Shown here one piece after another: positions 1 to 56,645 of a stretch of DNA of 64,000 bases (position 1 is its first letter; every line of letters starts with the position of its first letter). The stretch is from IMG/VR virus record IMGVR_UViG_3300022744_000022, positions 144,487 to 208,486 of that record, one strand, 5' to 3'. The notes below the pieces were generated by a model that made no database searches, had not been told where the DNA came from, and saw only the letters and a list, made by a program, of their open reading frames with translations. The translations under genes were made by a program, and so were the position numbers.

Positions 1-1035
1 CTGATCACTCTTGAACGAGACGCCCTCGTCACGAACATGTTCCAGGTAACCGCGAACCGTCTTCGTGAGGCTCACCGTGGGAAAGGGCGTCACGGGTCCT
101 GTGGCCTTGGAATCGGGGAAACGGTGGCGGATGCTCTCCAGCACCCGGATCAAGCGTTGCGTATCGGTGACCTCCAGGATCGCGAGCTGACCCGCAAGAA
201 GCTCACGTTTTCCCGTGACCTAAAGTTCGCCGAGTTCGGTGGACGAGGACCTTCTGTAGATCACCCCTTCAGCGATCAGCGTCTTGAATTCTACCTAGAC
301 CTCTACGCGGACTTCGCCAAACGCTATCAAATCGTGGACCGGCAGTACCTTGAGCAGCAGCTCAAGCAAGAAGGCACCGTGATCTTCGAGGGGGCTCAGG
401 GCGTCCTATTGGATCAGGACTACGGATTCCACCCGTACACAACGTGGTCCGACACGACCTTCGGCAATGCCCACGACCTGCTCCAAGGGTTCGATGGGCC
501 GGTACGTAAGATTGGCGTGCTCCGGGGCTACATGACCCGGCACGGTGCGGGACCTTTCCCGACCGAGCTACCTGACGACGTTCGATTGGACTGCGACATC
601 CAAACGGACCTGCACAACAAGTGGGGTGAATTTCAACGGCACTTCAGGGTCGGGCATTTCGATGCCGTGTTGGCCCGTTACGCCTTGGAAGTCATTGGGG
701 GTGTGGACGAGTTGGCGATCACCAACCTCGATAAGCTCGGGGCAAAGCCGCAGATCTGCCCAAGCTACCGTGACGACTTCGGTCGCAAAGTTCACCGCAT
801 CGCGCCCAAGAAGCTCGATGACTTCATGTTGGAACAAGGTGCCCACCACTGGACGCGGATCTTACCCACCTTGAAGCCCAACTACGTGACGCTGCCTGAT
901 CGAGTCAGCATCGTAGACTGCATCGCCGAAGAACTTAGAACCTCTGTGACGCTGTGCTCAGTCGGACCCAAGACCCAGCATAAGTGGCCAACCCGTTACC
1001 TCCGAGACCTACAGGCGAGCCAATGGAACTCCTGA
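1..1035 (+). CDS. Adenylosuccinate synthetase-like protein (divergent PurA family), 5' end outside window
   Basis: Motifs HGSCGLGIGET, VIFEGAQGVLLD-YG-HPYTT-S, YMTRHGAGPFPTE, RVGHFD, LAITNLD; frame is open back to base 1. Confidence 0.85.
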   Translation: MITLERDALVTNMFQVTANRLREAHRGKGRHGSCGLGIGETVADALQHPDQALRIGDLQDRELTRKKLTFSRDLKFAEFGGRGPSVDHPFSDQRLEFYLDLYADFAKRYQIVDRQYLEQQLKQEGTVIFEGAQGVLLDQDYGFHPYTTWSDTTFGNAHDLLQGFDGPVRKIGVLRGYMTRHGAGPFPTELPDDVRLDCDIQTDLHNKWGEFQRHFRVGHFDAVLARYALEVIGGVDELAITNLDKLGAKPQICPSYRDDFGRKVHRIAPKKLDDFMLEQGAHHWTRILPTLKPNYVTLPDRVSIVDCIAEELRTSVTLCSVGPKTQHKWPTRYLRDLQASQWNS

Positions 1036-2219
1036 CCATCGCCACCAACATCAAGGCTGCCAAGTGCCCTGAGGACATCTTCGGTGGCCCTCCGGATGGC
1101 AGCACCGTTACGCCGGTCTACCGCCAGCTCATCCTCGTGATCCACCCTGATCACTTCGATGGAAAGCCCACAGAGCTGGCCACTGCCACGGAAGCATTCC
1201 GGCTCCTGGCTCAGCTCCGGGGTGAGGCCGAACGCAAGATCAAGGCGGGCAAGTACGGCCAGAAGAAGGTCAAGGCACCGCCACCCAAAGAGCCCTTCCG
1301 CCCCTCAGTGGTTGAGGCCAACGGCAAGCGCTACATCTTGACGGATCAGGTTGCCTCGGGGGACCTGTGCGACATCTTCCTGTGTACGATCTCCAACGGA
1401 TCTGCCGACCACAAAGCCATTTTTAAGATCGTCAAGAACGGGGCTGACAACGATCTCGTTGAAAACGAGATCAAGGTACTTGCGAAGCTCCACGCGCCTG
1501 GGGTCAAGTTCGACGAACGCTTTTTCCCGAAAACGAACGACTCGTTCGTCATCCGGGGACCCGGGTTTCAACGTCAAGTCAACGTCCTGTCGTGGTTTCC
1601 AGAGCACCGAGGACTTGACGAGGTGCTGAGAGTCTTCCCGGACGGCATCGACTACCGTGACATGGTGTGGATGTTCAAACGCATCCTGCACGGCGTAGGG
1701 TTCGCCCACGAGAACCAGATCGTACACGGGGCCCTGATCCCGCCTCACATCCTGATCCACCCGGTGGACCACGGGGCCAAAATCATCGATTGGTCGTATG
1801 CGGTGGACATTACGCCTAAAGTCAAGGCGGTCAAACCCAAGACTCACCGCAGCCTTTACGACCTCTTGGACGCGGACGACATCCTTACTCCAGACCCGCA
1901 CGTCAAGGCAATCAGCGCCGACTACAAGTTGTATTACCCGCCGGAGATCCTTAAGAAAGAGATCCCGACGCCCGCCAGCGACATTTACATGGCAGCCAAG
2001 TGTGCGGTAGCCTTGGTGGGTGGTGACTTGAAAACGAACGCAATGCCCAACGAGATCCCTGGAACTGTCCGGGCCTTCTTTGAGCGTTGCCTTCATGCGG
2101 TTCCGGCCAAGCGTCCGCAGAACATGTGGGACGCCCATGAGGAGCTGGACCGAATCTTGAAAGCAGCCGTGGGCAAACGAACTTACCGACCCTTCCCCAT
2201 GCCTGAGGTACGCCCGTGA
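1023..2219 (+). CDS. J-domain-like (HPD) + Ser/Thr protein-kinase-like fusion
   Basis: YRQLILVIHPDHF; kinase-fold elements FKIVK..NE, IVHGALIPPHILI, IIDWS, YYPPE, SDIYMAA; ATG 1023 overlaps the upstream gene end. Confidence 0.75.
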   Translation: MELLTIATNIKAAKCPEDIFGGPPDGSTVTPVYRQLILVIHPDHFDGKPTELATATEAFRLLAQLRGEAERKIKAGKYGQKKVKAPPPKEPFRPSVVEANGKRYILTDQVASGDLCDIFLCTISNGSADHKAIFKIVKNGADNDLVENEIKVLAKLHAPGVKFDERFFPKTNDSFVIRGPGFQRQVNVLSWFPEHRGLDEVLRVFPDGIDYRDMVWMFKRILHGVGFAHENQIVHGALIPPHILIHPVDHGAKIIDWSYAVDITPKVKAVKPKTHRSLYDLLDADDILTPDPHVKAISADYKLYYPPEILKKEIPTPASDIYMAAKCAVALVGGDLKTNAMPNEIPGTVRAFFERCLHAVPAKRPQNMWDAHEELDRILKAAVGKRTYRPFPMPEVRP

Positions 2220-3418
2220 TGATCCGTTATGAAGACCGCCTCGCACAGCTCCGAGAGCTGCCCGTACGGATCTACTGTGCGGCAGCCGGGGCAGGAGCTG
2301 GGATTCAACAGATCCTCTGGAACCCCGTCGGAGCATCGGCCTATCTGGCTGGGGCTGCCTTCCCGTACTCCAAGGAGTTGTCCACAGACTTCTTGGGTTT
2401 CCAGCCCCCGAGCTTTGTGTGCCTTGATGAAGCCATCGACCTCGCGATCTCGTCCTATCTCAAGGCCGACAACGGGGATCCGACCAAGCAGCCCATCGGC
2501 CTAGGTTTGACCGCTGCGGTCGCCACGGCAGTGCAGCACCGTGGGGATCACCGAGTTCACGCGGTCGTGATCACGAGGGATCGTGTGCTTGCCTCGGAGA
2601 TGACGCTCCCCAAAGAGGGTCCGCACGTTCGTAACCGAGACGGCAGCATCGCGGACACGCTCGGGATCGAATTGATTTTGGCGGCAGCCAACCTGATCCC
2701 CGAGCCCGTCCGAGAGGCATACTTGGAAGCCACCGACGGACAGTGCCTCAAAGACATCACGCAGAGGGCCCGCCAGCACTTCCTGAGCCGACCGCTGTTT
2801 ACCCGGTACGGTCAACGCCTTGAGGCACCTGCGGGGAACCTGACGCTGTTCCCGGGCAACTTCGACCCGCCTCACGAGGGGCACTTCGCCAACGCGGGCG
2901 AAGAAGTGACGTTCCAGATCACCGCGAGCCCGCCGCACAAGCCGGGTTTGAGCCTCACGGACATGTTGGGCCGCGTTCGCCACTTCCGGCACAAGCGGGA
3001 CGTGCTGTTCATGGAAGGCGGGGCACTCTACCTGGAGAAGGCCCGGAGGTTCCCTGGTTCGACTATCATCCTGGGGAGCGATGCCCTCGAACGGATGCTT
3101 GATCCCAAGTGGGGCGTGGAAGTGCTGCCGTTGCTGACCGAGTTCCGCGAGCTGGGGACCAGGTTCAGGGTTGCGACACGTGAGGGGGACGAGTTCGCAC
3201 GGCTCCCGATCCCAGGGACCTTCCGAGACATGTTCACTGAGCTGCCCAAAACCCCGTACGCGGGCTTGAGTTCGACGCAGATCAGAGAGGGCGTATTGGC
3301 CCCCACCTCTCACGCGCCCCCCGGCACGGGCCAAGTGTGTGGTGCCGCTAATGATTGCACCCGGTTCAAAGGACACACAGGGCAGCACGCCAATCTCTAC
3401 AACCAGCGTGTTTGGTAA
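2216..3418 (+). CDS. CinA-like N-terminal domain + HxGH cytidylyltransferase/NMNAT-like nucleotidyltransferase
   Basis: N-terminal GAS..L.....PYS; C-terminal LFPGNFDPPHEGH, IILGSD, LSSTQIR; overlaps kinase stop. Confidence 0.7.
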   Translation: MMIRYEDRLAQLRELPVRIYCAAAGAGAGIQQILWNPVGASAYLAGAAFPYSKELSTDFLGFQPPSFVCLDEAIDLAISSYLKADNGDPTKQPIGLGLTAAVATAVQHRGDHRVHAVVITRDRVLASEMTLPKEGPHVRNRDGSIADTLGIELILAAANLIPEPVREAYLEATDGQCLKDITQRARQHFLSRPLFTRYGQRLEAPAGNLTLFPGNFDPPHEGHFANAGEEVTFQITASPPHKPGLSLTDMLGRVRHFRHKRDVLFMEGGALYLEKARRFPGSTIILGSDALERMLDPKWGVEVLPLLTEFRELGTRFRVATREGDEFARLPIPGTFRDMFTELPKTPYAGLSSTQIREGVLAPTSHAPPGTGQVCGAANDCTRFKGHTGQHANLYNQRVW

Positions 3419-4045
3419 TCACAAGTCGTCTTCGTCCTCTAGAGCAGCCCACAAGCCGCCGCCGCTGCCCCGGAGTTGGTTCTGCATCACACGTTGAAGT
3501 GGTGTGACGGCTTTGAACATGGCCTCCCGTCCAGAGTCATCGGGGACGGTCAGCGTAAAGAGCATCACGGAGTGCGTTTCATCGAGTAGCGTCAGAAGCC
3601 GGGTGCCTTCTTTGGGGCCAGGATCGAAGATGAAGTGGAGCCGCCAAACCCCACCGCCCGCACCCTGCTGGTTCTGGAACCCAGTCACCACGTGGTAGGG
3701 CTCGTCCGAGAGGGGCTCTGCTTGATACTGCGTCCCAATGGCTCGCAACCGAACGGCGAGATCCGACGAGTTTGCCAGCCCGAGGTTCCGCTCTCTAGTT
3801 TCTTGTATCACCTGCTCGGGGGTCTTCTTCACGGGGACGTGCAGGATCGTCTCCATGTATTCGTGGACACCCTGCGTCACTTTCGCTTTTGGGGTGGCCG
3901 TGTAGCTGATCGTCCGATTCCGTGGGTGCTCTTGGTGTAGTAACCCATTAGCCTTGCCCTGGACCCCCATGGTCCGGATCACGATCACCGTCGGACATTC
4001 CTCAGGGTTCAACCGAATCGGCCTACGTGTGACATCGATGAGCAC
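3419..4045 (-). CDS. Hypothetical protein with C-terminal LWAALEDEDDL tag
   Basis: 208-aa ORF; GGTGTA 9 nt before GTG. Confidence 0.65.
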   Translation of the reverse strand: MLIDVTRRPIRLNPEECPTVIVIRTMGVQGKANGLLHQEHPRNRTISYTATPKAKVTQGVHEYMETILHVPVKKTPEQVIQETRERNLGLANSSDLAVRLRAIGTQYQAEPLSDEPYHVVTGFQNQQGAGGGVWRLHFIFDPGPKEGTRLLTLLDETHSVMLFTLTVPDDSGREAMFKAVTPLQRVMQNQLRGSGGGLWAALEDEDDL

Positions 4046-4069: not shown

Positions 4070-4624
4070 ATGAAAGACCTCCGGACAACCGAATTTGTGC
4101 GCGCCTGGGGCGTCAAGGATGTGCCCACGGCGTCAGTCTCCCACGGGGCTGTACGTCCAGGCAGTTACCCGGCGTTCGCCTTGCTGGGCTGGGTGGAGCA
4201 GCGGAAAGCGGGCTGGCCCGTCGTGGGGCTCCGCCTGACCTTGCTCCAGAACGAGCTAGACGAGCCTGCTGGCGGGCTCACGATGGGCCTACCGCTCACG
4301 CCAAAGAGCGAGCGGCACGTCTGCTGCTTCTTGCAGGACCTAGGCTGGGATGGCCGCGTGTGGCCGTACAAGGACCATGGGTGGCCCGAGGGTACGCCCG
4401 ATGAGGACGGCTTGCTACTCCTACTCAAGGCATCCAAGCTCGGGGCCACCCTGACGTTCCCCTCGGACCCCGAGAAGGGTACCCCGACAGTCAGGATCCC
4501 AGTGCTGCAACGAACCGGGACCTTCTCGGTGGCACCCTTCGGCGAAGAAATCGTGCCCCGGTACCTCGATGCTCTCAGGACCCTTGCGGCAAACCCCACA
4601 CCATTCAAATCGGATTGGGCATGA
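4070..4624 (+). CDS. Hypothetical protein
   Basis: 184-aa ORF, ATGA-coupled to the NADAR gene. Confidence 0.55.
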   Translation: MKDLRTTEFVRAWGVKDVPTASVSHGAVRPGSYPAFALLGWVEQRKAGWPVVGLRLTLLQNELDEPAGGLTMGLPLTPKSERHVCCFLQDLGWDGRVWPYKDHGWPEGTPDEDGLLLLLKASKLGATLTFPSDPEKGTPTVRIPVLQRTGTFSVAPFGEEIVPRYLDALRTLAANPTPFKSDWA

Positions 4625-5127
4625 CCATCAGCTTCTATGGGGAGACCAACGAGCGGTACAGTTGGCTCTCGAACTTCCACGTGGCGATCTTCACACTCCA
4701 AGGGCACCAATGGGCTTCGACGGAACACTTCTACCAAGCCATGAAGTCTGAGGACCCCGAGGTTCAGCTCCAGATCAGGAGCGCCGCGACCCCGGGACAG
4801 GCTAAGCGGTTGGGTTCCAAGTGTGAACGGCGTGCTGATTGGGAAGAACCCGTAGGTACCCCTGCGTTGCACGACATTTTTCGAGATGACCGGGGGATCG
4901 TGGTGGAACTCGTGAAGGACCACTTCATGTACCAAGCGCTCACCGCGAAGTTCACGCAACGTCCCGAGCTACGTGAGGCGTTGATCTTGACGGGCACTGA
5001 GGAGCTGCAAGAAGCCTCACCCAAGGACTACTACTGGGGCGTGGGAGCCGACGGTTCGGGGCAGAACAAGCTCGGTCGAATGCTCCAGCTCGTGCGGGCT
5101 CAACTACCGAACCGCTGGTCACCGTAG
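4621..5127 (+). CDS. NADAR (YbiA-like) family N-glycosidase
   Basis: LSNF, TEHFYQAMK, AKRLG, AKFTQ, EASP.D.YWG, GQNKLGRML. Confidence 0.9.
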   Translation: MTISFYGETNERYSWLSNFHVAIFTLQGHQWASTEHFYQAMKSEDPEVQLQIRSAATPGQAKRLGSKCERRADWEEPVGTPALHDIFRDDRGIVVELVKDHFMYQALTAKFTQRPELREALILTGTEELQEASPKDYYWGVGADGSGQNKLGRMLQLVRAQLPNRWSP

Positions 5128-8114: not shown

Positions 8115-8543
8115 GTGGCCCGGACCAGACAACGATTCACGAGCAAGGTGACGGTTAGGACAACGCTGCCGTTAGGTCGTAGTGAAACGCTCGGTTCGGT
8201 GCAGAACAAGCAAATCCGGCGTCCCGATGCCCCCGGGTACATCACGGGGATGCTGGGTAAGTGGTTCCTCGTGTTGCATGAGGGGGAAACGACCCCCGCT
8301 ATCTACAACCCAGAGGAACTCAGGCTTGAGCCGCACGCCTACTGGCGGGTCACCCACACCCTGGCAGGACAGCCCTACTTCAAGGAATTCGGAACCTACC
8401 GCGAGGTCGAGAAGCATTTGAAAGCGCTGGGCAAGTTGGGCGGTGTAGCCCTTGGTATCGAAGGCCCTTTCTACTCCGCAAAGGAGTTGGAAGAGGGGCC
8501 TGTCCCCACCCGAAATCTTTTTGATCATTTGAACGACGCATGA
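8115..8543 (+). CDS. Hypothetical protein with C-terminal RNLFDHLNDA tag
   Basis: 142-aa ORF, GAGGTG SD, coupled to next gene. Confidence 0.6.
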   Translation: MARTRQRFTSKVTVRTTLPLGRSETLGSVQNKQIRRPDAPGYITGMLGKWFLVLHEGETTPAIYNPEELRLEPHAYWRVTHTLAGQPYFKEFGTYREVEKHLKALGKLGGVALGIEGPFYSAKELEEGPVPTRNLFDHLNDA

Positions 8544-26493: not shown

Positions 26494-26981
26494 CCACTGA
26501 CACCAAACCTCGGATCAACACCATCCACAATCTCGGGCCCATCGACCCCGTGGAGCCCGGACACACGTACGAGTTCCTGTTTGGCATGAGCACACGAGCC
26601 GGTCACGTACACGAGCGGGGCTCGCTCCTGCACGTCGAAGACCGCACCACCCGAACCCCGCATGGGGAGATCAGTGAATCCGGAAGCAACTGGGTGTGCC
26701 GAACCCAGCACGGCACGTCCGTGTGGGCTACTCTTGAGCAGTGCCTGTCCCGGGGCATGCTCAAACGCCTGAGGGACTACACGGTTTACTTCTGGAACGG
26801 GGAGCTGGGGGCAGACCCCAAGGACCGTCGGGGACGCCCTCTCGTACACAACACCGTCATGGGCTTCACAGCCGACGACCTCGAAAATCTGACGGGCCAC
26901 TACGACGTGATGATCACGACGAGCACTTGCCCGCCCGTCCTATACCTCAACAAGGTCGGTGGGAAATTCGGCCAGCGCTAG
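26490..26981 (+). CDS. Hypothetical protein
   Basis: 163-aa coupled ORF. Confidence 0.6.
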   Translation: MTTDTKPRINTIHNLGPIDPVEPGHTYEFLFGMSTRAGHVHERGSLLHVEDRTTRTPHGEISESGSNWVCRTQHGTSVWATLEQCLSRGMLKRLRDYTVYFWNGELGADPKDRRGRPLVHNTVMGFTADDLENLTGHYDVMITTSTCPPVLYLNKVGGKFGQR

Positions 26982-27460
26982 TCGTCTGCCAGATGATCCC
27001 AAAGGGTCACTGGCTTAGCAGCGGTCTCCGGCGTAGGGGTGTCTCGCCTGTAGAGACGACGCTGATACAGGGGTTGCAGATCAGGCTCAACCCGTTCCCC
27101 AAACCGGGTGAGCGCTTCGATCATCCCACGTGAGATCCTGGCATCCGAACGTATACGGATCCTGACCCTGGAGGGGTGGACTTCCACACCGTGAAATCCG
27201 ATCTCGGCGGCGAGCGCTTGGATCGTTTGAACGAGGTGCCGATCCAGATCCCGTTCACCGGCCACGTGATCCTCGACCTCAAGCCACCCTTCACGATCTC
27301 GGGAGCGTGCAGGGTTCACGATGAGCCGACGCAGGTAGCTTAGCGCCAAGACCGTGGAACGCCCTGTACGGCGGTAGTCCTCGGTCCCATCATGGAGCCA
27401 GTCCAAGGCTTCCAGAGCCCTGCGTTGAGGCGGCGTGAGCGAGAAGACGGGTGGGGGCAC
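26978..27460 (-). CDS. Hypothetical protein with C-terminal VTLWDHLADD tag
   Basis: GGTGTA 9 nt before GTG; RTGRST degenerate P-loop-like. Confidence 0.65.
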   Translation of the reverse strand: MPPPVFSLTPPQRRALEALDWLHDGTEDYRRTGRSTVLALSYLRRLIVNPARSRDREGWLEVEDHVAGERDLDRHLVQTIQALAAEIGFHGVEVHPSRVRIRIRSDARISRGMIEALTRFGERVEPDLQPLYQRRLYRRDTPTPETAAKPVTLWDHLADD

Positions 27461-28274: not shown

Positions 28275-28627
28275 GACGCAACCGCCCACTTGAGGTTGCT
28301 GAATCGAACCTCGATAGACGAGGTAAGGTGATGCCGCAACACCTTATCCTCACTGACCTGGAGTTCCCGGTTGGACATCTTCGATAGGTACTCGAAGATG
28401 TTACCGTCCTGATCAAGAAGCTTGAGCACCGTTCCAGGGTCGGGATCCGCAGGCAAGTCCACCGTGATCTCATCGTGCGTCATCATCACGATACGGGGCT
28501 CTTGGAGCGAGAACCCGAGCGGTGCAACAGGGGCCTTTGCGGAAATCTTGCGACGGGGCGCTTGGCCCACAACAAGGCCAACAGCCACTGCGCCCAAGGC
28601 GGTCAAGAATCGTCTTCGCGTGGTCAT
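28271..28627 (-). CDS. Protein with Tat-like signal peptide
   Basis: MTTRRRFLTALGAVAVGLVVG. Confidence 0.55.
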   Translation of the reverse strand: MTTRRRFLTALGAVAVGLVVGQAPRRKISAKAPVAPLGFSLQEPRIVMMTHDEITVDLPADPDPGTVLKLLDQDGNIFEYLSKMSNRELQVSEDKVLRHHLTSSIEVRFSNLKWAVAS

Positions 28628-29151
28628 AGGGTGTCCCTTTTCATGTCAGGCCCACGCGGGGTTTCGACTGCTTTCAACCACGGGGTAATGCACTGCCCCT
28701 CAGCAAGATCTTCTGTGTCTGGGGGGACCCAACAAGCCCAAAAGCTGTCTAGGGTAGCGGCACCGCCCACCCCCTCGGTGATGCAGCTCGTCTCCCACTC
28801 TTTACCGCAGCAGGCATACGCGAAGAGCGTTGTTCTTTGTTCCGCAGCTAGAATGCGAAGGGGGCGACACGGTTTTTGACAACTAGGGCAAAATCGACAG
28901 TATTGGTTCCAAGCACGACGTACATACAGGTAAGCACGTCGTAGGATCCCCCAGTTGTCCTCCATCCGTCCGATCGTTTGATTGCACCGGCCACAAAGCA
29001 AACCCCGCACCTGCCCCGTTTGATGATCGTGATCTACAGCGAGCGAACGGTTTTCAACCCGTTCTGGTTTCAAACAGATCCAACAGCGATCACCGCTGAT
29101 CTCAACCATTTGAGCACGATCATCCTTGGACACTTTAGCCTGTACCCTCAC
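28624..29151 (-). CDS. Endonuclease VII-family (His-Me) nuclease
   Basis: CWIC...LAVDHDHQTGQVRGLLCGRCNQTIG. Confidence 0.85.
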   Translation of the reverse strand: MRVQAKVSKDDRAQMVEISGDRCWICLKPERVENRSLAVDHDHQTGQVRGLLCGRCNQTIGRMEDNWGILRRAYLYVRRAWNQYCRFCPSCQKPCRPLRILAAEQRTTLFAYACCGKEWETSCITEGVGGAATLDSFWACWVPPDTEDLAEGQCITPWLKAVETPRGPDMKRDTL

Positions 29152-29957
29152 AGCGACACCTCGTGAAAGCCGTTGGGGAAGATCCGCTTAGGCTTGGATC
29201 CCTGACGAACCCAGAAGTCGCCGTTCGGTTGCTGTCCGTTGGGACGTAGCGCACTCAACCTCGGAACGATCAAGGGCAAGATAGTCGGGGGCAACGGTTG
29301 ACGCTGGCTCGGGGCTTGGTTCATCGGGCCCACAAGGTTCGACTCGAACTCGCCCGCTGGGTCGCCCCAGATCAACGTGTGGTCTACTCGAACATCACCG
29401 GGGACAGGCGGCCGACCATCATGGGCATCGACCGTCGGGAAGAACAACCACTTCGGGAACCGGGGCCGGTACCACCAAAGCAAGGGTTCAGCCTTGATCG
29501 TGCCCGACCAGCAGCACACCGCGATGGGCCACCCCGGGTAAAGCTTCTGGTACTCCGTGAAGAAGCCGGGGGCCACCGTCGGGCGCTTGTGCTCCGCCAC
29601 GTACCCGAGGGCCTGCGGGATCGCTTCAGCGTCGGTCGCGAGCACCACTGTGTACGAACCTGAATCGAAGATCTGGACCCCAGCCCCAATGAGCGGGCCA
29701 CCCTTGGTCATCGACCGGGACCGCATCCGGCACATCATGTCCATGTCTTCGAGAAGCCAAGGGGTCGCCCGAGTGTCCACGAGGTTGTGGGGCCCCATGG
29801 CCTCAAGAGTCGGGATCGGGAGGATCATCGCGTTGGGTCCGCGAGAGTTGGCCCGGTTCTGGTACCCGAGCACATGGGCCTCAGCCCCCTCGTGCTGGAC
29901 AGAGGCCGTGTAGATGATGGTGCCGGAGAGGGTGGCTTGGCCGAGCGTGACGCACAT
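29148..29957 (-). CDS. Hypothetical protein
   Basis: 269-aa ORF; GGTGTA 10 nt before ATG. Confidence 0.7.
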   Translation of the reverse strand: MCVTLGQATLSGTIIYTASVQHEGAEAHVLGYQNRANSRGPNAMILPIPTLEAMGPHNLVDTRATPWLLEDMDMMCRMRSRSMTKGGPLIGAGVQIFDSGSYTVVLATDAEAIPQALGYVAEHKRPTVAPGFFTEYQKLYPGWPIAVCCWSGTIKAEPLLWWYRPRFPKWLFFPTVDAHDGRPPVPGDVRVDHTLIWGDPAGEFESNLVGPMNQAPSQRQPLPPTILPLIVPRLSALRPNGQQPNGDFWVRQGSKPKRIFPNGFHEVSL

Positions 29958-32084: not shown

Positions 32085-34019
32085 ATGGGACTTAAAAAGT
32101 ACGTTGTTGAGAACCTGATCAGCAACACCACGGAATTTCACCTCTACATCCATGAGGCACACGCTAACGCGAGTGACAGCAACTCAGGTCTAGATCCTAA
32201 CTTCCCGTTAGCCTCCTGGGCGGCGGCAGAAGCCAAGACCCCGCTCGACACCAAAGCCCATTTGTTCTGGCACATGGGCCCCCACTCGGGAAGCGGCTAC
32301 ACCCTGACCCCGTGCCGACAGCGCATCCTACGCAACTGCAACTGGTACATCCTGGGTGACGGCGGCGGAAACGATGCACTGGCCCGTAACGTCTTGACCA
32401 GCGGCTCCGTAGCCAGTTCGGCAGACAATGCAATCTTCATCCCCGTCAGTGTTCCGGCGGCCCACGCTTGGAAGGGTAAGTCGCTGCGTTGGACCTCAGG
32501 CGCTAACTCGGGGGCCGGGTTCGATCAAGAACTGCGAACCATCACATCACAGACGGGTGGCATCATTTTGGCCAACCCGGTCGCGAATACGATCCAACCG
32601 GGCGACACCTTCGAGGTCTTCATCGGGACCACGAACCTGTTGCTGCTCGATAGTAGCGCAAACCCGCCGAGCGCCGACCTAGAACCTATATTCAACGCAA
32701 CAGGGCTCATCCCGTCTCAAGCTCCCCGAGATATCAGTGCCCCGCCAACCCCCAACTACGTTTCGCAAGACAACTCTACGGGACGTATCGTTCTAGTGAA
32801 CGTCAATTTGCTGGGCACCCTGGCGCTACCCAGCTCGCACTTCTTGGTCATCCGCGAGAGCGCTCTTGTCATGTACGGCGTCACCAACATGACAGGGCTT
32901 GGGGACGATACTGGAGGTTCGTACCAAGGCTTCTATCAAGGGGCGGACATCTTGATGGGGTACGATACGGTGCTCACTTACGTCGGAGCAACATTCTCCG
33001 CCAAAAACGGACCCTTTACAGGTTTGGCCTCAACGGACTCACAGTGGGTGGGCTGGGGACGTGGCCACGGTCACGGAAATCAAGCGGTCAGCCAAGATAC
33101 CCCTTTCCTACTGTGTCTCGGTGGAAACCACCGGGGCTTCGTATCCTCACCTTCCTTTGTCATCACCAACGGTAGATTGGGTCTCTATGGGAACTCGATC
33201 GTTGAGCCCGGAAGCATCATGGGCTTTGGGGTATCCGGTTTGGGTGGGGTGCTTGAACTCGGCCTGTTTGCCGGAGGGATTTGGGACTACACAACGATCA
33301 CTGGCGACGGCCCCTTGGCGTTGGACCTCAGCTCTGCTGTTAACGCAGGGTTTGATTTGGTGAGCAACTTATCTGGTTCCCCTGCGTTGGAGCTGGGAAG
33401 TGGGAGCCACGTCCTTTGGTTGGGAGGCGACATCACTTGTACCCCCGCCACGGCCAACACCGAAGTAGTGCGCCTCTTAGAGGGGTCGAGCTTCACCACT
33501 AGCGCCAATCTTAGCATCACCGACGGTAATGGAGCGCAAGACGTGATGACCATCGGGGGTATCACCAGGTTGACTCAAATCCCGGGCATAAATTATGCCG
33601 ATGCAGGGTGCAGGTGGACCACAGAAGTGGGTACACCTGCTGGGGGTACAATCGCGGACTACTCAGACTCCCGTACCGTCCAGACCACGGACGCCACGGT
33701 CACCACTATCCTGACCTACACAACCCGTTCAGATCTCAGCGTGATCTCAATTCACGCAACCGTCTGGGGCATCGCAACTGGAACAGGGGACGCCGCCAAG
33801 TACGTGATCGAAGCCACGTTCTACCGCGATGGGTCCAGTGTGGTAACCCAGAAAAACGTGGCCTTCCTCTCGACCTACGAATCGCAAGCCGCTTGGAACG
33901 CGAGTTTCACCATCTCGGGGCAAGACATTTGGATGCAAGTGCAAGGCGACGTTGGAACAGTCGTTGACTGGCGCTGCAAAGCCACCATCGATGAGAGCGT
34001 CGGCACGGGTGGTGCCTAA
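32085..34019 (+). CDS. Probable virion structural / tail-associated protein
   Basis: 644 aa, Gly/Ser/Thr-rich beta-type composition; C-terminal TVQTTDATVTT domain. Confidence 0.55.
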   Translation: MGLKKYVVENLISNTTEFHLYIHEAHANASDSNSGLDPNFPLASWAAAEAKTPLDTKAHLFWHMGPHSGSGYTLTPCRQRILRNCNWYILGDGGGNDALARNVLTSGSVASSADNAIFIPVSVPAAHAWKGKSLRWTSGANSGAGFDQELRTITSQTGGIILANPVANTIQPGDTFEVFIGTTNLLLLDSSANPPSADLEPIFNATGLIPSQAPRDISAPPTPNYVSQDNSTGRIVLVNVNLLGTLALPSSHFLVIRESALVMYGVTNMTGLGDDTGGSYQGFYQGADILMGYDTVLTYVGATFSAKNGPFTGLASTDSQWVGWGRGHGHGNQAVSQDTPFLLCLGGNHRGFVSSPSFVITNGRLGLYGNSIVEPGSIMGFGVSGLGGVLELGLFAGGIWDYTTITGDGPLALDLSSAVNAGFDLVSNLSGSPALELGSGSHVLWLGGDITCTPATANTEVVRLLEGSSFTTSANLSITDGNGAQDVMTIGGITRLTQIPGINYADAGCRWTTEVGTPAGGTIADYSDSRTVQTTDATVTTILTYTTRSDLSVISIHATVWGIATGTGDAAKYVIEATFYRDGSSVVTQKNVAFLSTYESQAAWNASFTISGQDIWMQVQGDVGTVVDWRCKATIDESVGTGGA

Positions 34020-39036: not shown

Positions 39037-39577
39037 TCTCCTGAAGCATCTTTATAAATAGTTCCCCCTGTTCCTGTGCATCGGACAGGGCGACATGGGT
39101 ATGGGGGTTCTTGGAAAACCAACGCTTGGGCATGTTCCGCTTAGTAGCCTTTCGGAAGTCGCTCTTGAGCATGCACATGGCGAACGTCTTGATGTCTAGG
39201 CCGGAGAACGAGAAGGGGCTCTCGCCCGCGAACCTGATCAAGTACCAGTACACGAACATGAAGTCGTACGTGGCGGGGTACCCGACGAACACAGGCTTGC
39301 CAGGAAGGCCCTTGAGCCACTCTAGGTAGCCCTTCATGGCATCCACGGGGGTCACAAGGCCTTGACGGCACGCTGCCCAAGCCTCGGGCTGCCCCGCCCA
39401 CCATTCGGCGGTTTTGGGGTCTGCGGAGGCCCCTGGTAGCGTTTCTAGATTCCGCGTGAAGGTGTCGAGCAACGTGCCCTCTGACGAGAAGGCAGCGGAT
39501 CCGAAGCTCAGCATCGAGTTGGGGCCGGGGATTGGGCCGTCGGATTTAATGTCTGTGGAGACGTAGATTTCTTGCAT
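39020..39577 (-). CDS. DEDDh 3'-5' exonuclease (RNase AS-like); ExoI Glu reads Lys
   Basis: [33 protein letters not shown]. Confidence 0.8.
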
Positions 39578-39586
39578 CCTGGCCGC

Positions 39587-39603
39587 TACACCAAGCCGGT
39601 GTA
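39587..39603. promoter_or_regulatory. Divergent pair of GGTGTA elements
   Basis: TACACC-aagcc-GGTGTA; starts 9 nt (39577) and 10 nt (39614) away. Confidence 0.65.
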
Positions 39604-39613
39604 CTCTGCCCGG

Positions 39614-40036
39614 GTGCTCATCAACCTACTCGGCCCGATCATCCTTGCACCGTACGCGGATCGGGATGAACTCAGCTTCTTGACCAAGGACACGCGCCCT
39701 AAGGGCCTCGTGACTGTGATCCACGACGGCCTTGTGTACAAACAGCAAGGGGGCGAGCGGCAGGTCTTGGTTGAGGCGTACTGGCAAGTCCAAGAAGGTG
39801 TGATCCGAACCGCAATCCCGCTCAACCAAGCCTGTGGGCATAAGTTCTACTGTGGACACGTCTGGACCTCAGAACACGGCGAGTTCAACGTCAACAACCG
39901 CATCGTCTCAGTGTGCCTCAATGACGACATCTTGATCGTTACCCCTACGGGCGGGCAACCGCTGATGCTTGACCTTGGGCTAAAGATGGAAATCACGCAG
40001 GAAAAGCGAACCCTCTGGGATCTCTTGGCTGACTAG
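39614..40036 (+). CDS. Hypothetical protein with C-terminal RTLWDLLAD tag
   Basis: GTG 39614. Confidence 0.65.
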
Positions 40037-40537: not shown

Positions 40538-41221
40538 ATGACGAACGCATTCTGGAAGGGTCTGGCCAAGGTCGGACTTGTTGAGATCAACGAAGACGCC
40601 CCCGCCGCCTCTCAAGGCGAGACGGCTGCACAGCATACGGCGGTCACGGCTCGCCCTGCGGCCACACCGGCGGCACCTCCTGTCGGCGACCCTGGGCTCG
40701 TGGCAACCCTAGACGAGTCATCCAGGGCACAGCTCGTGGCTTCGATGGAGGCATCGGGGGCACAGCTCGTAGAAGACCTGATGGACATGCTCGGGACGCT
40801 CCGGGAGAACATCACCGATGAAGCGGCGCTCTACAAGGCGGCGCTCAAGATCCTGATCAAGCAGGGCAACACAGTCCTGGCGATTCGTCAGGACTTCGAC
40901 AAGTGCATCGGGGCCCTCGAAACCACAAACCGCGAGTTTGCGGCTCAACTCAAGAGCCAACTTGACAAGCGGGTGGGTGGTAAGCTCAAGACCGCTCAAG
41001 ACTGCAAGGCTCAGATAGCTGCCAAGCAGCAACAGATCGAAGCACTTCAGAACGAAGTGGCCAACCTTGCGGCCCAAGCTCACGAAGCTGAGGGCAGTGT
41101 GGCCGATGAACAGGCCAAGCTCGATCTCGCTCAACAGCGGTTCACACACAACTACACAGCGATTCGCGGAGAAATTGAAGCCAACTGCGCGAAGGTCGCC
41201 CAGTACGGGGAGAAGCTATGA
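40538..41221 (+). CDS. Coiled-coil protein (operon gene 1)
   Basis: Long heptad-like C-terminal half; coupled to next gene. Confidence 0.75.
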   Translation: MTNAFWKGLAKVGLVEINEDAPAASQGETAAQHTAVTARPAATPAAPPVGDPGLVATLDESSRAQLVASMEASGAQLVEDLMDMLGTLRENITDEAALYKAALKILIKQGNTVLAIRQDFDKCIGALETTNREFAAQLKSQLDKRVGGKLKTAQDCKAQIAAKQQQIEALQNEVANLAAQAHEAEGSVADEQAKLDLAQQRFTHNYTAIRGEIEANCAKVAQYGEKL

Positions 41222-42282
41222 ACGAGATCACGACCAGTCAGCCAAAGAAGTGGTACGAGAAGCCGGAGAACGTCCTGGTCTACGGCGTGCTTGGGGGCGT
41301 GGCTGTCTACAGCATCAAGCACATCGAGTCGATCGTTGCCTCGATCGTCCACATCATCGAGATGGGGGTCTGGGGGCTCGCGTTGCTGCTGGTGGGTTCC
41401 GTGCTGGGCTTCATGCTCGTCAACGGCGACTTCCACCGTGCCGCATGGCTGCTGTACGAAAACGCCATGCGTAAGGTTACGGGCCTGATCGTTGAGCTGG
41501 ACCCTATTGGGTCCATGAAGTCCTTCCTCAAGAGCTTAGGCAAGTACCAACAACAGCTCAAGACGAGTTTGCAAGCCATGCGTGGGCAGGCTGAGAAGCT
41601 CACGGACAAGCTCTCTCGTTCGGATCAGGCACAAGAGCACAGCCTCAAGCTGATGTCGCAGGCTCAGTCCCGTTCAACCGAAAAGGGCATGGCCCTTGAG
41701 ATGCGCAAGCAAGGTCGGAAAGCCTCTCGCGCCGAAGATCTCTCGATCACGTACCAAGGCCTACTCAACAAGGTCCGCATGATGATCGCGGTCATGGAGA
41801 AGGTCGAGGAAGCCACGGACTTCATGGTCGTGGACATCGCGGAAACCATCGAGACGGAATCCGAAAAGCGGGAGACCATCAACGAAGCTTGGAAGGCTAT
41901 GAACGCCGCCAAGCGTATCCTTGCCAAGAACAAGCAGCGTGAGATCTACGACATGGCGTTGGAAGCGACGCAGCGTGACTACGCCTTCAAGGTCGGCGAG
42001 ATCAAACAGTTCATGCGGGACACCGAGAGCTTCATCAACACGATGGATCTCGAAAACGGTGTGGCAGACGCCGATGCCCTCAAGATGCTTGAGCGTTGGG
42101 AGCAACGTTCCCTTGCTCTGCTCGAAGGCGGCTCGGGTAAGACCAAGTACCGTGTGGCCCCCGTCACAGCGGGCAGCTCACGCATGCTCGTGTCCAGCAC
42201 CGGCGCTCAAGTGATCGATGCCGAGATAGTTGAAGGCGACCGGCCTTCGTTCGCCACTCTCTTCGACAAGCTCGACAAGTAG
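41218..42282 (+). CDS. Membrane-anchored PspA/IM30-like coiled-coil protein
   Basis: Two N-terminal hydrophobic helices, then ELDPIGSMK.. and a long coiled coil. Confidence 0.6.
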   Translation: MNEITTSQPKKWYEKPENVLVYGVLGGVAVYSIKHIESIVASIVHIIEMGVWGLALLLVGSVLGFMLVNGDFHRAAWLLYENAMRKVTGLIVELDPIGSMKSFLKSLGKYQQQLKTSLQAMRGQAEKLTDKLSRSDQAQEHSLKLMSQAQSRSTEKGMALEMRKQGRKASRAEDLSITYQGLLNKVRMMIAVMEKVEEATDFMVVDIAETIETESEKRETINEAWKAMNAAKRILAKNKQREIYDMALEATQRDYAFKVGEIKQFMRDTESFINTMDLENGVADADALKMLERWEQRSLALLEGGSGKTKYRVAPVTAGSSRMLVSSTGAQVIDAEIVEGDRPSFATLFDKLDK

Positions 42283-46898: not shown

Positions 46899-46899
46899 A

Positions 46900-47199
46900 T
46901 CACCCCAGGATCTCTTTCACTCGCTCGTCCAGGGTCTCTTTACCGTGGACGATTTCGATGATGTGCAGCGAGCCCCGCCAACGATTCAGGCCGTCGTCCT
47001 TCGGATCCTTGACGCCCAGGCCCGTCAGATCGTCGTCAAGCCCGCGTTGGACCTTGGCTTCGGCTTCAACGCGCCCCATCTCGTCACGGCAGACTTCGAG
47101 CGCTTCCTCTTCGGTCATCCCGTAGTGCGTGAAATCGTCCACGACGGTGGAGAATCTGGCCAACAGACCGTTGGGTTGTTTCACGATCCGGGATGGCAT
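46900..47199 (-). CDS. Hypothetical protein
   Basis: KQPNGL.ARFSTVVD.FTHY.MTEEE. Confidence 0.65.
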   Translation of the reverse strand: MPSRIVKQPNGLLARFSTVVDDFTHYGMTEEEALEVCRDEMGRVEAEAKVQRGLDDDLTGLGVKDPKDDGLNRWRGSLHIIEIVHGKETLDERVKEILG

Positions 47200-47441
47200 G
47201 TCTCTTTCGCTTTCCAGCCCTCTTTACGGGCCTTCTCTAACAAGTCGAGGGTGTCGTCGGGCCTGGAAACCGAGACCCGAGTGTGTGGGATCCCGGCGGA
47301 CTCCAGGTCATCCAATTCGATGCGATGGACCTCGCCGTCCTCTTGGTCGCCCATCTCGAAGTAGCCTTCAAGCGGTCGCCAAGTCCAGAGCCAACCGCAG
47401 CGTTCCTTACCGTCCTTGGTTCGGATCACCAGGTCATGCAT
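47181..47441 (-). CDS. Hypothetical protein
   Basis: Overlapping ORF in block. Confidence 0.55.
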   Translation of the reverse strand: MHDLVIRTKDGKERCGWLWTWRPLEGYFEMGDQEDGEVHRIELDDLESAGIPHTRVSVSRPDDTLDLLEKARKEGWKAKETCHPGS

Positions 47442-47823
47442 TGGGCTTTTTCTGGTCCGCCTTGAACCCGCGAGTTTTGGCCCGGGTGATCCGCTTGATC
47501 CGCTTCTCGACCAGCTCTTGGATCACTTCCTCGCGAGCCTTTGTACAAGCCTGTACCAAGAGCGTGTCTTCGTAGAGCCGCAGCTTTCGCAACGCTTCCT
47601 CAGGCGTGTAGTCGGGGTAGACCTTCGTGGGCTCGTCCGTGTCGTGAAGCCAAACGCGACCCTCACGTGGGTTGCACATGACCACGAACATACCGCCAGA
47701 GCTGAGGCTCAGAATGCCGCGAGCCTTCGTGACGGAGTGCCCCGTCTCTGGGTAGCTCGCGTACTGCCCCAGCCGATCAATCCGCCGAGCCGTGTCCTGA
47801 ATCTTTTGCAGTAGAGTTGCCAC
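47434..47823 (-). CDS. Hypothetical protein
   Basis: GGTGTA 10 nt before GTG. Confidence 0.6.
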   Translation of the reverse strand: MATLLQKIQDTARRIDRLGQYASYPETGHSVTKARGILSLSSGGMFVVMCNPREGRVWLHDTDEPTKVYPDYTPEEALRKLRLYEDTLLVQACTKAREEVIQELVEKRIKRITRAKTRGFKADQKKPNA

Positions 47824-48115
47824 GCCCTACTGTTACACCGGGCTCATCTTCTTTCAAGTGATCCCAGAGCGTCCTGAGGCTACGAGCAGGGGGCTCCAGC
47901 AATTTGGACGGTTCGACCGGGGATTCTAACTTGTACTCAGGGGGCGAGATCAGTGCCCCCTGTACAGGCGGGGTGGTGGTCGCGACCAAGTACGTGATGG
48001 TACCCCGGGAGTCCATCAAGCAGAGGCGGCCCAGCTCATCTAGGAACATGGAAGCGTACCCCCTAGGCGGGGTCTGAACGCTACTCGTTGAGGCACGTCG
48101 GAAGCGTAGCGCCAT
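47777..48115 (-). CDS. Small protein with RTLWDHLKEDE tag; paralog of 38244-38432
   Basis: MFLDELGRLCLMDSRGTITYL; GGTGTA 10 nt before ATG. Confidence 0.65.
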   Translation of the reverse strand: MALRFRRASTSSVQTPPRGYASMFLDELGRLCLMDSRGTITYLVATTTPPVQGALISPPEYKLESPVEPSKLLEPPARSLRTLWDHLKEDEPGVTVGRGNSTAKDSGHGSAD

Positions 48116-48134
48116 ACCCGAGGCCTACACCGCA

Positions 48135-51024: not shown

Positions 51025-51525
51025 TCAAGAGTCGTTCAATTTGTCCCACAGGGAAGTGGGCGGCGGTTCTTCCCGGGGCTCATCGAACATCGCCTCATCG
51101 CTCAACTGGACCAGCACCGGGGCGTTCCGCAGGGGGCACCAATCGGGAGTTCCGCTCTGAGGTACCGGCCGTTCCGCCAACCTGGTGCATCTCTGGATAG
51201 AGCAGAACGGGCAGCTCTGGCACCCGTCCACCGACTGGGATCCGACTTGCAGGGTCCTCAGGGACGGTTCTTCGGTGTCCCAGCACGCCATGCAGGCCGA
51301 ACGCATCCGCCCATCCGCAGAGATACTCGCGGAGAACCGTTCTCCACAGGACACGCAAGCGTGTGTCCACACGGGGGTGTCGTCTTCCTCAGGTGCCGCC
51401 ATGGGTTGAACGTAGTCTTCAAGGTGAAGCGGTTCCATCGCGTACACACGGCAGTCCGAGCACTCGCCCCTTCTCAGACGCAGCTCATCTTCGACTTCAA
51501 CACCGCAGCCGGTACAAGTGGGCAC
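51025..51525 (-). CDS. Cys-rich protein with C-terminal TSLWDKLNDS tag
   Basis: Multiple CxxC, PDWCPL; GGTGTA 9 nt before GTG. Confidence 0.65.
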   Translation of the reverse strand: MPTCTGCGVEVEDELRLRRGECSDCRVYAMEPLHLEDYVQPMAAPEEDDTPVWTHACVSCGERFSASISADGRMRSACMACWDTEEPSLRTLQVGSQSVDGCQSCPFCSIQRCTRLAERPVPQSGTPDWCPLRNAPVLVQLSDEAMFDEPREEPPPTSLWDKLNDS

Positions 51526-56117: not shown

Positions 56118-56510
56118 TCAATCATCCCCGCCCAACAAGCCCCAAAGTAAATCAGGGGTCTTGGGGTAGTGCAAGAACGGTTCCGGTAGCAAATCACCGT
56201 GACGGTTCTTAAGGTACCCCATCATGACACCTTGACCCATCACGAAGCCCGTGGTGATCAAGTCGGCCATCTTCGCCGCATCATCGGGAACGTCCCGAAC
56301 ATGAAAATGTCCAGCGTTGCGTTGAGCACTCCTGAGCACCGAACCACTGGCCCGGATCTCCAGCAGCACCACGATCTTTTCCTCAAGGGCCCGATGCTTG
56401 GCCGCCCACGCATCCCCTTTCATGACCACGAGGTTTGCAGGGAACAGCTCTAGGGGCCGTTGCCCCAGGTGGACCCAAAGATCCCCTGGTTTTAGCTCGA
56501 AATGGAACAC
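56118..56510 (-). CDS. Hypothetical protein with C-terminal LLWGLLGGDD tag
   Basis: GGTGTA 9 nt before GTG 56510. Confidence 0.6.
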   Translation of the reverse strand: MFHFELKPGDLWVHLGQRPLELFPANLVVMKGDAWAAKHRALEEKIVVLLEIRASGSVLRSAQRNAGHFHVRDVPDDAAKMADLITTGFVMGQGVMMGYLKNRHGDLLPEPFLHYPKTPDLLWGLLGGDD

Positions 56511-56645
56511 GCCACAGTCTACACCGAAACAGCATCGGTGTGCAGCAGCCCCGTGAGACGCTGCACTTCTTGCCGTAAAGCATCTCGGTCTGCACGGCAC
56601 AGGTCAGCGCAGCCTTTGGCGCAAACCTTTCCGGTCGTCGGGCAA

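Follow-up and report, generated by a model that had tools for sequence, protein, structure and literature searches.

The window analysed here is a stretch of 64,000 nucleotides (positions 144,487 to 208,486) of the 208-kb phage contig IMGVR_UViG_3300022744_000022 (referred to below as G000). Near its start lies a gene for a 398-aa protein (P0001) with an N-terminal J-like domain and a predicted kinase fold, and elsewhere in the window are several ORFs ending in variants of one short peptide. The features of the J-domain plus kinase-fold gene are as follows (window coordinates).

1023..2219, plus strand: gene for the J-domain plus kinase-fold protein; its start ATG at 1023 overlaps the end of the upstream PurA/PurZ-like gene
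1023..1250, plus strand: N-terminal J-like domain, with HPD at 1143-1151
1722..1754, plus strand: catalytic-loop equivalent, VHGALIPPHIL
1782..1802, plus strand: DFG-equivalent, IIDWSYA
1806..1850, plus strand: basic linker, DITPKVKAVKPKTHR
1830..1898, plus strand: 23-residue insertion in the activation segment, VKPKTHRSLYDLLDADDILTPDP
1851..1880, plus strand: internal copy of the tag, SLYDLLDADD, with the core LYDLL at 1854-1868
1932..1946, plus strand: APE-equivalent, YYPPE

A J-domain plus kinase-fold protein with an inserted peptide

The protein matches the Pfam Pkinase family (PF00069; E=9.3e-8, 32.2 bits against a cut-off of 31.7) and phrog_3043 'kinase' (E=5.8e-44). Its AF2 model has a mean pLDDT of 94.9, and the best Foldseek matches of the model are PknB (E=5e-12, TM by target 0.76) and PknA. 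We found 244 relatives with E<=1e-5, and the consensus of the homologs begins M-x-L, which fits the start at 1023. Among 120 homologs the beta3 Lys (K135) is invariant, and the alphaC Glu (E149) and the metal-binding Asp of the DFG-equivalent (D256) are conserved in at least 90%; Y305 and E308 of the APE-equivalent are invariant. The catalytic loop, however, is not canonical: a profile alignment to Sky1p pairs HGAvlPph with HTDIKPEN, so that Ala, Ile and His stand at the positions of the usual Asp, Lys and Asn. H235 and G236 are invariant, and A237 and H242 are conserved in at least 90% of the 120 homologs. The protein should be called a kinase-fold protein or a possible pseudokinase, rather than a proven kinase.

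The J-like domain has its HPD motif at residues 41-43, flanked in the model by helices 29-40 and 49-74 (a further helix covers residues 2-12), and HPD is in the family consensus. The match of this protein to the DnaJ HMM is weak (E=0.007, 14.6 bits, below the cut-off), but the relative at locus L014 has a full-scoring DnaJ domain (E=3e-27).

An earlier note, made from the sequence alone, had claimed that a basic linker and a copy of a C-terminal tag lie between the DFG-equivalent and the YYPPE loop, and our analysis confirms this observation. The protein reads IIDWSYA, the basic linker, SLYDLLDADD, and then ILTPDP, HVKAIS and YYPPE. BLASTP against the Bixzunavirus kinase (32% identity) leaves one 23-residue gap exactly over VKPKTHRSLYDLLDADDILTPDP, so the segment is a true insertion. 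Activation-segment length is bimodal among the 120 homologs. In the model the insertion has a pLDDT of 69-78 (against more than 94 in the flanking regions), with a short helix predicted at residues 278-283 (pLDDT about 70-78).

The same peptide at the ends of phage proteins

The motif, roughly [S/T/N/D/G]-L-[W/F/Y]-D-x-L followed by acidic residues, ends about 10 ORFs of the contig, seven of them in the window. The ORFs of the window that carry it are:

3419..4045, minus strand: ORFan (208 aa, P0002; no Pfam or PHROG family) ending in GLWAALEDEDDL; the ortholog in G001, a 416-kb relative, ends in GLWGAVLDDDF
8115..8543, plus strand: ORFan ending in NLFDHLNDA; a relative on a 433-kb contig ends in SLFDHLKDGD
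26978..27460, minus strand: ORFan (160 aa, P0242) ending in TLWDHLADD; the G001 ortholog ends in NLWDHLTDPQ
39572..40036, plus strand: ORFan ending in TLWDLLAD; the G001 ortholog ends in TLWDHLKL
41218..42282, plus strand: 354-aa protein with membrane-like segments (hydrophobicity peak 2.25), ending in TLFDKLDK
47777..48115, minus strand: small ORF with TLWDHLKEDE 25 residues before its end; the G001 ortholog ends in TLWDHLRDDEGKDGQ
51025..51525, minus strand: Cys-rich ORFan ending in SLWDKLNDS
56118..56600, minus strand: ORFan ending in LLWGLLGGDD, a degenerate copy of the tag

In six-frame ORFs of the whole contig, L[WFY][DGA][HLKA]L occurs 14 times, and 10 of these occurrences lie within 7 residues of a stop codon. 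In the selected gene set there are 6 hits in 3,406 tail positions against 3 in 63,343 body positions (Fisher test, odds 37, p=1.3e-6). From the body rate, the chance of a hit in a 398-aa protein is about 2%; here the hit falls inside the one large insertion and is conserved in homologs.

Other genomes of the clade have their own versions of the tag. Six-frame counts of tagged ORFs are 10, 45, 9 and 22 in G000, G001, G002 and G003, respectively: those of G001 end in LWDHL, and those of the two further relatives G002 and G003 in TRF(D/E)RI. With each genome's own motif, C-terminal enrichment is significant in G001 (odds 72, p=2e-29), G002 (odds 33, p=2e-7) and G003 (odds 36, p=8e-19), and blind 4-mer counts recover LWDH in G001 (23 tails against 4 in bodies) and RFER in G003 (21 against 4). 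In contrast, two phages whose kinase lacks the insertion (G004 and G005) have no tail hit for either version of the motif, and their enriched tail 4-mers do not form a coherent motif. An internal LWDHL in G001 (300234-301481) is a buried helix of a folded protein and is not conserved in its orthologs, so we take it as chance.

The tag is selected as a peptide, because its codons vary freely: all six Arg codons and five Leu codons are used at tag positions, and orthologs at 33-47% identity keep the tag. The 20 residues before the tags are 11-16% Pro, against 6% in the proteome. The internal copies are also kept under selection: the 61%-identical ortholog of P0001 keeps the insertion as PTLYDYLTDD, and among the 120 homologs 39 have the tag in the activation segment, 14 in an N-lobe loop and several near the N-terminus, with no homolog carrying both loop insertions. 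The internal copy in P0001 scores 17.4 with the matrix built from the C-terminal tags of its own genome and at most 2.1 with the matrices of the other three genomes. Each kinase's copy scores best with the matrix of its own version of the motif (its own genome's in G000-G002, a near-tie between the two TRF(D/E)RI genomes for G003). Three further versions found in other loci again match neighbouring C-terminal tags: TNAWEA, TVWDRL/TMWDHL and TAWARL/NAFSRL. Within 10 kb of tag-bearing kinases, 10 of 287 ORF tails fit a general pattern, against 4 of 599 near tagless kinases (p=0.003). There are exceptions: two loci with tag-bearing kinases (L096 and L091) showed no C-terminal tags within 10 kb, and one locus with a tagless kinase (L114) has a tag-like tail. 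Moreover, the genomes compared are related, so the co-occurrence counts are not independent.

What the internal tag may do

The best explanation is that the insertion is an internal copy of a short docking peptide that this clade of huge phages otherwise places at the C-terminus of many small accessory proteins; we put its probability at about 0.55. A Pro/Lys-rich flexible linker leads into a helix-capping residue (S, T, N, D or G), followed by the core (a hydrophobic or Arg residue, an aromatic, Asp or Glu, any residue, then an aliphatic) and usually by an acidic run; the model folds the core as a one-to-two-turn amphipathic helix. We propose that this helix plugs into a shared receptor acting in trans, which would bring the J-domain (thought to recruit host DnaK) and the kinase-fold domain to the same place as the C-terminally tagged proteins. 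Both ends of the protein are occupied, by the J-domain at the N-terminus and a conserved tail at the C-terminus, so in this view the tag was placed in whichever surface loop tolerates it.

The inference in the earlier note that the tag is modular and works internally is thus supported, on the basis of conservation rather than an assay, and homologs from the phages without C-terminal tags (G004 and G005) lack the segment. The note left open whether the copy recruits the kinase or regulates it; its independence from position favours recruitment, but this is inference. That the tag binds a receptor is likewise inferred, as is a phage origin of the receptor, which is suggested by the phage-specific versions. 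No receptor was found: no Hsp70, ClpP or TPR_12 is encoded, but several AAA+ proteins and J-proteins are present. The candidates we rank highest are the phage's own AAA+ unfoldases, including a ClpX homolog, in which case the tag would act as a tether or degron. The J-protein that is present in all four tag-bearing genomes and absent from both tagless ones has a C-terminal domain with no fold match in the PDB. The kinase copies prefer Tyr or Phe where most C-terminal tags in G001 have Trp, which could mean a different use, and a moderately confident helix in a monomer model is also compatible with docking in cis on the kinase itself.

It is possible, though doubtful, that the kinase-fold domain is itself the reader of the tags. 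C-terminal tags would then dock small proteins onto it, as substrates or as clients to be handed to DnaK through the J-domain, and the internal copy would occupy the same groove in cis as a pseudo-ligand that sets a threshold. Kinase folds bind peptides next to the activation segment, where 39 of the 120 homologs carry the tag, and the other sites have linkers long enough to reach that groove. The replacement of the catalytic Asp, Lys and Asn means that the domain may bind rather than catalyse, and the insertion is not modelled as fully disordered. Every tag-bearing genome examined encodes this protein, although these genomes were found through the kinase. However, the variable position of the tag is unexpected for a precisely placed autoinhibitor, tagless orthologs in phages without tags show that the fold does not need the tag, and no contact information could be read from the model.

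Somewhat less likely is a special case of a receptor in trans, in which the tag is a degradation or unfolding signal read by a phage AAA+ machine (for example the phage ClpX homolog working with host ClpP) and marks the protein for timed removal together with early accessory proteins, rather than recruiting its activity. Tags lie within about 12 residues of a free end on flexible linkers, on small accessory ORFans of which about 15-20% look membrane-anchored, and no tag was seen at the ends of the structural or replication proteins examined. The phages encode a ClpX homolog with a zinc finger, a GYVG pore loop and an [LI]GF ClpP-docking loop (G000 86278-87549), although what is probably the region of the E. 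coli ClpX RKH loop does not read RKH; they also encode two further classic AAA proteins. ClpX is present in the tag-bearing genomes G000-G002 and absent from the tagless G004 and G005, but G000-G002 share about 50 or more genes that G004 and G005 lack, so this co-occurrence is weak evidence. In addition, ClpX homologs occur in many unrelated huge phages, no ClpP is encoded by these phages, and the known ClpX signals appear to be non-polar or basic, not acidic.

A classical activation-loop site, with the Ser or Thr (or the Tyr) of the motif as an autophosphorylation or phospho-dependent binding site and the C-terminal tags as substrates of the kinase, is very unlikely. The motif often begins with Ser or Thr and has Asp at +3 (resembling an acidophilic kinase site), it lies in the activation segment in this protein, and CK2 is among the sequence matches to solved structures. 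But the first position is freely N, D or G in many tags (9 N, 4 D and 9 T among 29 in G001), which fits a helix N-cap and not a phospho-acceptor; the tag lies outside the activation segment in other homologs; the catalytic base is missing (Ala at this position in at least 90% of the 120 homologs); and no FHA domain is encoded in G000-G004. Finally, chance resemblance, a neutral low-complexity linker or a translated DNA-level signal (promoter or terminator) is contradicted by the data, even though the motif is short and degenerate in this genome and GC-rich genomes produce many spurious ORFs (e.g. the antisense ORF at 1305-2336), because enrichment at ORF ends is strong in four genomes and absent in two, synonymous codons vary freely, and the motif is always in frame and is conserved between diverged orthologs and inside 39+14 kinase homologs.

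A more far-reaching reading, which we consider tentative, is that a clade of huge phages runs its own protein-addressing system: up to about a tenth of the ORFs called in some genomes (small accessory proteins, some membrane-anchored) end in a phage-specific address helix that is recognised by a dedicated phage-encoded reader, perhaps an AAA+ unfoldase, and the J-domain pseudokinase carries the same address in a loop, so that host DnaK is brought to, or acts on, that hub. This would be a viral analogue of organelle-targeting or degron systems, with tag and reader co-evolving from phage to phage. Most genes of huge phages are unannotated ORFans, and a shared, easily recognised tag sorts dozens of them per genome into one class. 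Short linear motifs are well known in eukaryotes and their viruses; here they may organise a large share of a phage proteome and move between the ends and internal loops of proteins, and searches for the motif strings and for related concepts found no published description. The result also bears on a widely annotated 'serine/threonine kinase' of large phages, including mycobacteriophage cluster C: it appears to be a J-domain protein whose catalytic loop lacks the canonical residues, so it may be an adaptor that links host DnaK to the tag system rather than a conventional kinase.

Comparison with known systems

Hub-docking motifs of replication proteins (PMC11139829), such as the bacterial beta-clamp-binding motif, the PIP box and the T4/RB69 polymerase C-terminal clamp peptide, likewise seem to have a hydrophobic/acidic core of 5-8 residues on a flexible linker, usually C-terminal but also working internally, and shared by unrelated proteins that meet on one hub. 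The carriers here, however, are accessory ORFans and a J-domain kinase-fold protein. No protein of the replication modules of G001 (20-62 kb) and G002 (95-125 kb), which include a DnaN-like gene, carries the tag, and for this reason we rejected a sliding-clamp peptide; the RNase HII tail DLFALFEAIDS is not conserved in its orthologs. The conserved Gln of the bacterial motif is also absent.

The SspB-type adaptor tail that tethers to the ClpX zinc-finger domain, and C-terminal degrons of AAA+ proteases, appear similar in architecture (a folded domain, a long flexible linker and a short terminal peptide), and these phages encode their own ClpX. The tag, however, is acidic and aromatic, and ClpX is not specific to this clade. 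Encapsulin cargo-loading peptides and phage capsid-targeting sequences are comparable in that they appear to be short terminal address peptides shared by unrelated cargo proteins and read by a virus-type shell or scaffold, but several tagged proteins have membrane-like segments, which fits capsid loading poorly, and no link to capsid genes was found. The pathogen 'DDVF' motif that hijacks host RSK kinases (PMC12548433) is a short acidic-hydrophobic motif used by unrelated viral and bacterial proteins to bind one partner, and some kinase copies here even read EDDVFD; that motif targets a eukaryotic host kinase, whereas here the motif lies inside the phage kinase-like protein and on the phage's own proteins, and the likeness is probably only compositional.

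The combination of a J-domain with a kinase is known from the human DNAJB1-PRKACA fusion (PDB 4wb7), which Foldseek aligns with our model over 406 columns, and phage J-proteins such as RB43 Rki (cited in PMC12619734) are thought to recruit host DnaK. As in the fusion, an N-terminal J-domain with HPD is joined to a bilobal kinase fold, but the protein described here belongs to a natural, widespread phage family with a non-canonical catalytic loop and an embedded, putative docking tag.

The kinase-fold protein and its insertion

The window is the last 64 kb of a single 208,486-bp IMG/VR viral contig (hereafter G000; GC 0.59, estimated 44% complete). The features around the insertion are as follows.

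Window 1023-2219, + strand: ORF encoding P0001, a 398-aa kinase-fold protein.
Window 1722-1754 (P0001 residues 234-244): equivalent of the catalytic loop, reading VHGALIPPHIL.
Window 1782-1802: IIDWSYA.
Window 1830-1898: the 23-residue insertion.
Window 1932-1946: YYPPE.
Window 1-1035, continuing upstream to G000 144193: an adenylosuccinate-synthetase-like gene.
Window 2216-3415 and 4615-5124, and G000 139244-141866 (locus records L009 and L010): a cluster of NAD- and nucleotide-related genes.
Window 1305-2336, - strand: an antisense ORF overlapping the kinase gene.

P0001 matches Pfam Pkinase only just above the cut-off, but it clearly matches the phage family phrog_3043 ('kinase'). Between IIDWSYA and YYPPE the protein reads DITPKVKAVKPKTHR, then SLYDLLDADD, then ILTPDP. 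The best-annotated relatives are the 'serine/threonine kinases' of Bixzunavirus mycobacteriophages, at about 32% identity, and the pairwise alignment has one 23-residue gap exactly over window 1830-1898. The earlier note, which had placed a copy of a C-terminal tag in the activation segment, is therefore correct in its observation, and the segment is an insertion.

AlphaFold2, run with 120 homologs, gives a confident model (mean pLDDT 94.9), in which residues 1-75 form a helical J-like domain (with HPD at residues 41-43) and the rest is a bilobal kinase fold. The best structural matches of the kinase fold are PknB and PknA, and the model also aligns along its length with the human DNAJB1-PKA fusion. 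The ATP-anchoring Lys (K135), the alphaC Glu and the DFG-type Asp (D256) are conserved. However, the loop HGALIPPH stands in place of HRDxKxxN: in a profile alignment to Sky1p, Ala, Ile and His are found where the catalytic Asp, Lys and Asn should be, and this holds across the family (the Bixzunavirus version reads HGAITPDN). We therefore call P0001 a kinase-fold protein and a possible pseudokinase; the widespread annotation 'serine/threonine kinase' may be wrong, and the protein could also have another chemistry.

The adenylosuccinate-synthetase-like gene lies directly upstream of the kinase gene, and its best PHROG is the PurZ family of 2-aminoadenine (Z-genome) phages. The pair of PurA-like gene and kinase is conserved in four of the related viral records described below (G001, G003, G004 and G005) and in further metagenomic loci (L091 and L092), and Bixzunavirus also has both genes within a few kb. 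The gene cluster around the kinase includes NAMPT, cytidylyltransferase-like (NMNAT-type) genes, NUDIX, NADAR, a nucleoside deoxyribosyltransferase-like gene and a 2H phosphoesterase with a weak Acb1 (anti-CBASS) match, which suggests NAD salvage and counter-defence.

A recurrent peptide tag at ORF ends

Across the whole contig, L[WFY][DGA][HLKA]L occurs 14 times in six-frame ORFs, and 10 of these occurrences lie within 7 residues of a stop. Seven tagged ORFs lie in the window, and an eighth ORF has the motif 25 residues before its end. All lack Pfam and PHROG families, and two have membrane-like segments. Enrichment at ORF ends is significant (odds 37, p=1.3e-6), although the gene sets were made by a simple ORF heuristic and the counts are approximate; long antisense ORFs overlap real genes (window 1305-2336, - strand, over the kinase gene; G000 85720-87966, - strand, over a ClpX homolog gene), they are artefacts of the high GC content that can mislead simple gene callers, and three tagged ORFs were missed by our length-based gene selection for this reason. 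Synonymous codons vary freely at tag positions in all four tag-bearing genomes (all six Arg codons and five Leu codons are used); selection therefore acts on the peptide, not on a DNA signal.

The 20 residues before the tags are rich in Pro (11-16% against 6%). The first tag residue is S, T, N, D or G, which are the classic helix N-cap residues, and an acidic residue three places later completes a capping box. In P0001, the model folds LYDLLD as a short helix (residues 278-283) at pLDDT about 70-78.

Tag versions in related phages and in the kinase copy

We compared G000 with five related viral records fetched in full (G001-G005). All of these genomes are metagenomic with unknown hosts, and G000 and G003 are incomplete. 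The relatives have their own versions of the tag, or none.

Kinase and C-terminal tags in the related genomes (size or completeness; kinase; ORFs ending in the tag; blind 4-mer count, tails against bodies)
G001: 416 kb; 61% identical; 45, (T/N/D)LWDHL; LWDH 23 against 4
G003: 145 kb; related; 22, (P)TRF(D/E)R(I/E); RFER 21 against 4
G002: 407 kb, complete; related; 9, same version as G003; RFER 6 against 2
G004, G005: 92-94% complete; no insertion; none; no coherent motif

A version-neutral pattern is enriched at ORF ends in G000-G003 (p from 4e-3 to 1.5e-14) but not in G004 or G005. Orthologous ORFans of G000 and G001, at 33-47% identity, keep the tag while the rest of the protein diverges. 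In G003, a sub-version of the tag ends exactly in PPTRFERE(D/E)VI (e.g. the tails of 32897-33283, 51329-52138 and 69722-70003), which superficially resembles the Hsp70 EEVD tail.

The G001 kinase keeps the activation-segment insertion, reading PTLYDYLTDD. The G002 and G003 kinases have a short or untagged activation segment, and carry GTRFDRILDDEDE and RTRFDHILEDDDDD instead, in a loop of the N-lobe. Position matrices built from the C-terminal tags of each genome score each kinase copy highest with matrices of its own version of the tag, but for G003 the matrices of the two TRF(D/E)RI genomes score almost equally.

Scores of each kinase copy with the tag matrices (own genome; other genomes)
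G000: 17.4; at most 2.1
G001: 18.1; at most 1.0
G002: 16.9; 13.7 (G003, same version), below 0 for G000 and G001
G003: 27.9; 28.5 (G002, same version), 12-14 for G000 and G001

Among 120 homologs from public metagenomes, the length of the activation segment is bimodal: 39 homologs carry a tag-like motif in the activation segment, 14 carry it in the N-lobe loop, several that lack the J-domain carry it near the N-terminus, and no homolog has both loop insertions. The kinase copies (residue 279 in P0001, and its homologs) prefer Tyr or Phe at the aromatic position, whereas most C-terminal tags in G001 have Trp; this may reflect a weaker, tunable or modifiable copy.

Three more versions appear in 37 further IMG/VR loci, and each is mirrored by C-terminal tags of neighbouring ORFs: kinase TNAWEALMADDD with tails PTAWEKMDDDDI and TNAWEAILDDS, kinase TVWDRLLDEG with tail PTMWDHLLQDPV, and kinase TAWARLMDEDDE with tail NAFSRLLSDD. 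Within 10 kb of the kinase gene, 10 of 287 ORF tails fit a general tag pattern when the kinase is tagged, against 4 of 599 when it is not (p=0.003). But there are exceptions: two loci with tag-bearing kinases (L091 and L096) showed no tagged neighbours, and one locus with a tagless kinase (L114) has a tag-like tail.

A possible docking function and its alternatives

These facts, although all functional statements drawn from them are inferences from sequence and models, fit a portable docking peptide of the SLiM or MoRF kind: a short N-capped amphipathic helix with an acidic trail, held on a flexible linker and added to the free end of small proteins. In a protein whose two ends are occupied (by the J-domain and by a conserved C-terminal tail), it is added to whichever surface loop tolerates it. 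The variable position, with no homolog carrying both loop insertions, argues that the protein needs one copy somewhere, and argues against a precise activation-loop switch. The likely consequence is that the J-domain, and therefore host DnaK, together with the kinase fold, is brought to the same partner as the tagged ORFans. That each phage has its own version suggests a reader that co-evolves and so is probably phage-encoded, but different hosts could produce the same pattern.

We could not identify the reader. These phages encode no Hsp70, ClpP, FHA or TPR_12. They encode three to five J-domain-like proteins each (e.g. at G000 128262 and 59871, G001 219414 and 269853, and G002 177699 and 378619), which suggests heavy use of host DnaK. 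A second J-domain protein of G000 (P0122; G000 64669-65796, locus record L006:4669-5793) lies in the structural module, next to a probable major capsid gene (the ORF with the highest GC3); its roughly 270-aa C-terminal domain is confidently modelled but has no fold match in the PDB, and about 129 relatives (E<=1e-5) turn up in public collections, many on contigs of hundreds of kb. The phages also encode a ClpX homolog that keeps the zinc finger, the GYVG loop and an [LI]GF loop (G000 86278-87549, locus record L007:6278-7549; G002 280061-282385, locus record L084:61-2385), and the G002 copy is interrupted by an intein (Hint plus LAGLIDADG). In addition, they encode two further classic AAA proteins; classic AAA ATPases with long poly-Asp/Glu C-terminal tails are found at G002 334379-335626 and G003 28445-29662, their Atlas neighbours often carry DUF5925, and the family is present in the tag-bearing genomes G001-G003. 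As AAA+ machines read terminal peptides, a tether or degron role is our leading guess for the reader, but the evidence is thin: ClpX homologs are common in unrelated huge phages, and the genomes we compared are related to each other.

It is also possible, though we hold this only tentatively, that the kinase fold is itself the reader, with the internal copy as a pseudo-ligand acting in cis. This is attractive because the catalytic residues are missing and the main site adjoins the substrate groove; the variable position argues against it. A phospho-site or FHA-type reading of T-x-x-D is unlikely, as the first residue varies, other homologs carry the tag outside the activation segment and the catalytic base is missing. 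A clamp-binding motif is not supported, as the replication-module proteins of G001 and G002 lack the tag; some of them (G001 46493-48385; G002 95682-97775) end in a different acidic-hydrophobic tail (for example FQDMLDQV, VLSLLEEL and DFESLLQSL), which may be a separate docking motif for the phage replisome. Chance, or a DNA-level signal, is excluded by the enrichment, the codon variation and the conservation.

Our literature searches found no description of the motif or of a tag system in huge phages, and reviews mention phage J-proteins and ClpX only in passing. The logic of the tag resembles that of clamp-binding and PIP motifs, the SspB tail that tethers to ClpX, degrons, and encapsulin cargo peptides. 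It differs in sequence, in the proteins that carry it (accessory ORFans plus a J-domain kinase-fold protein) and in scale (up to about a tenth of the ORFs called in some genomes).
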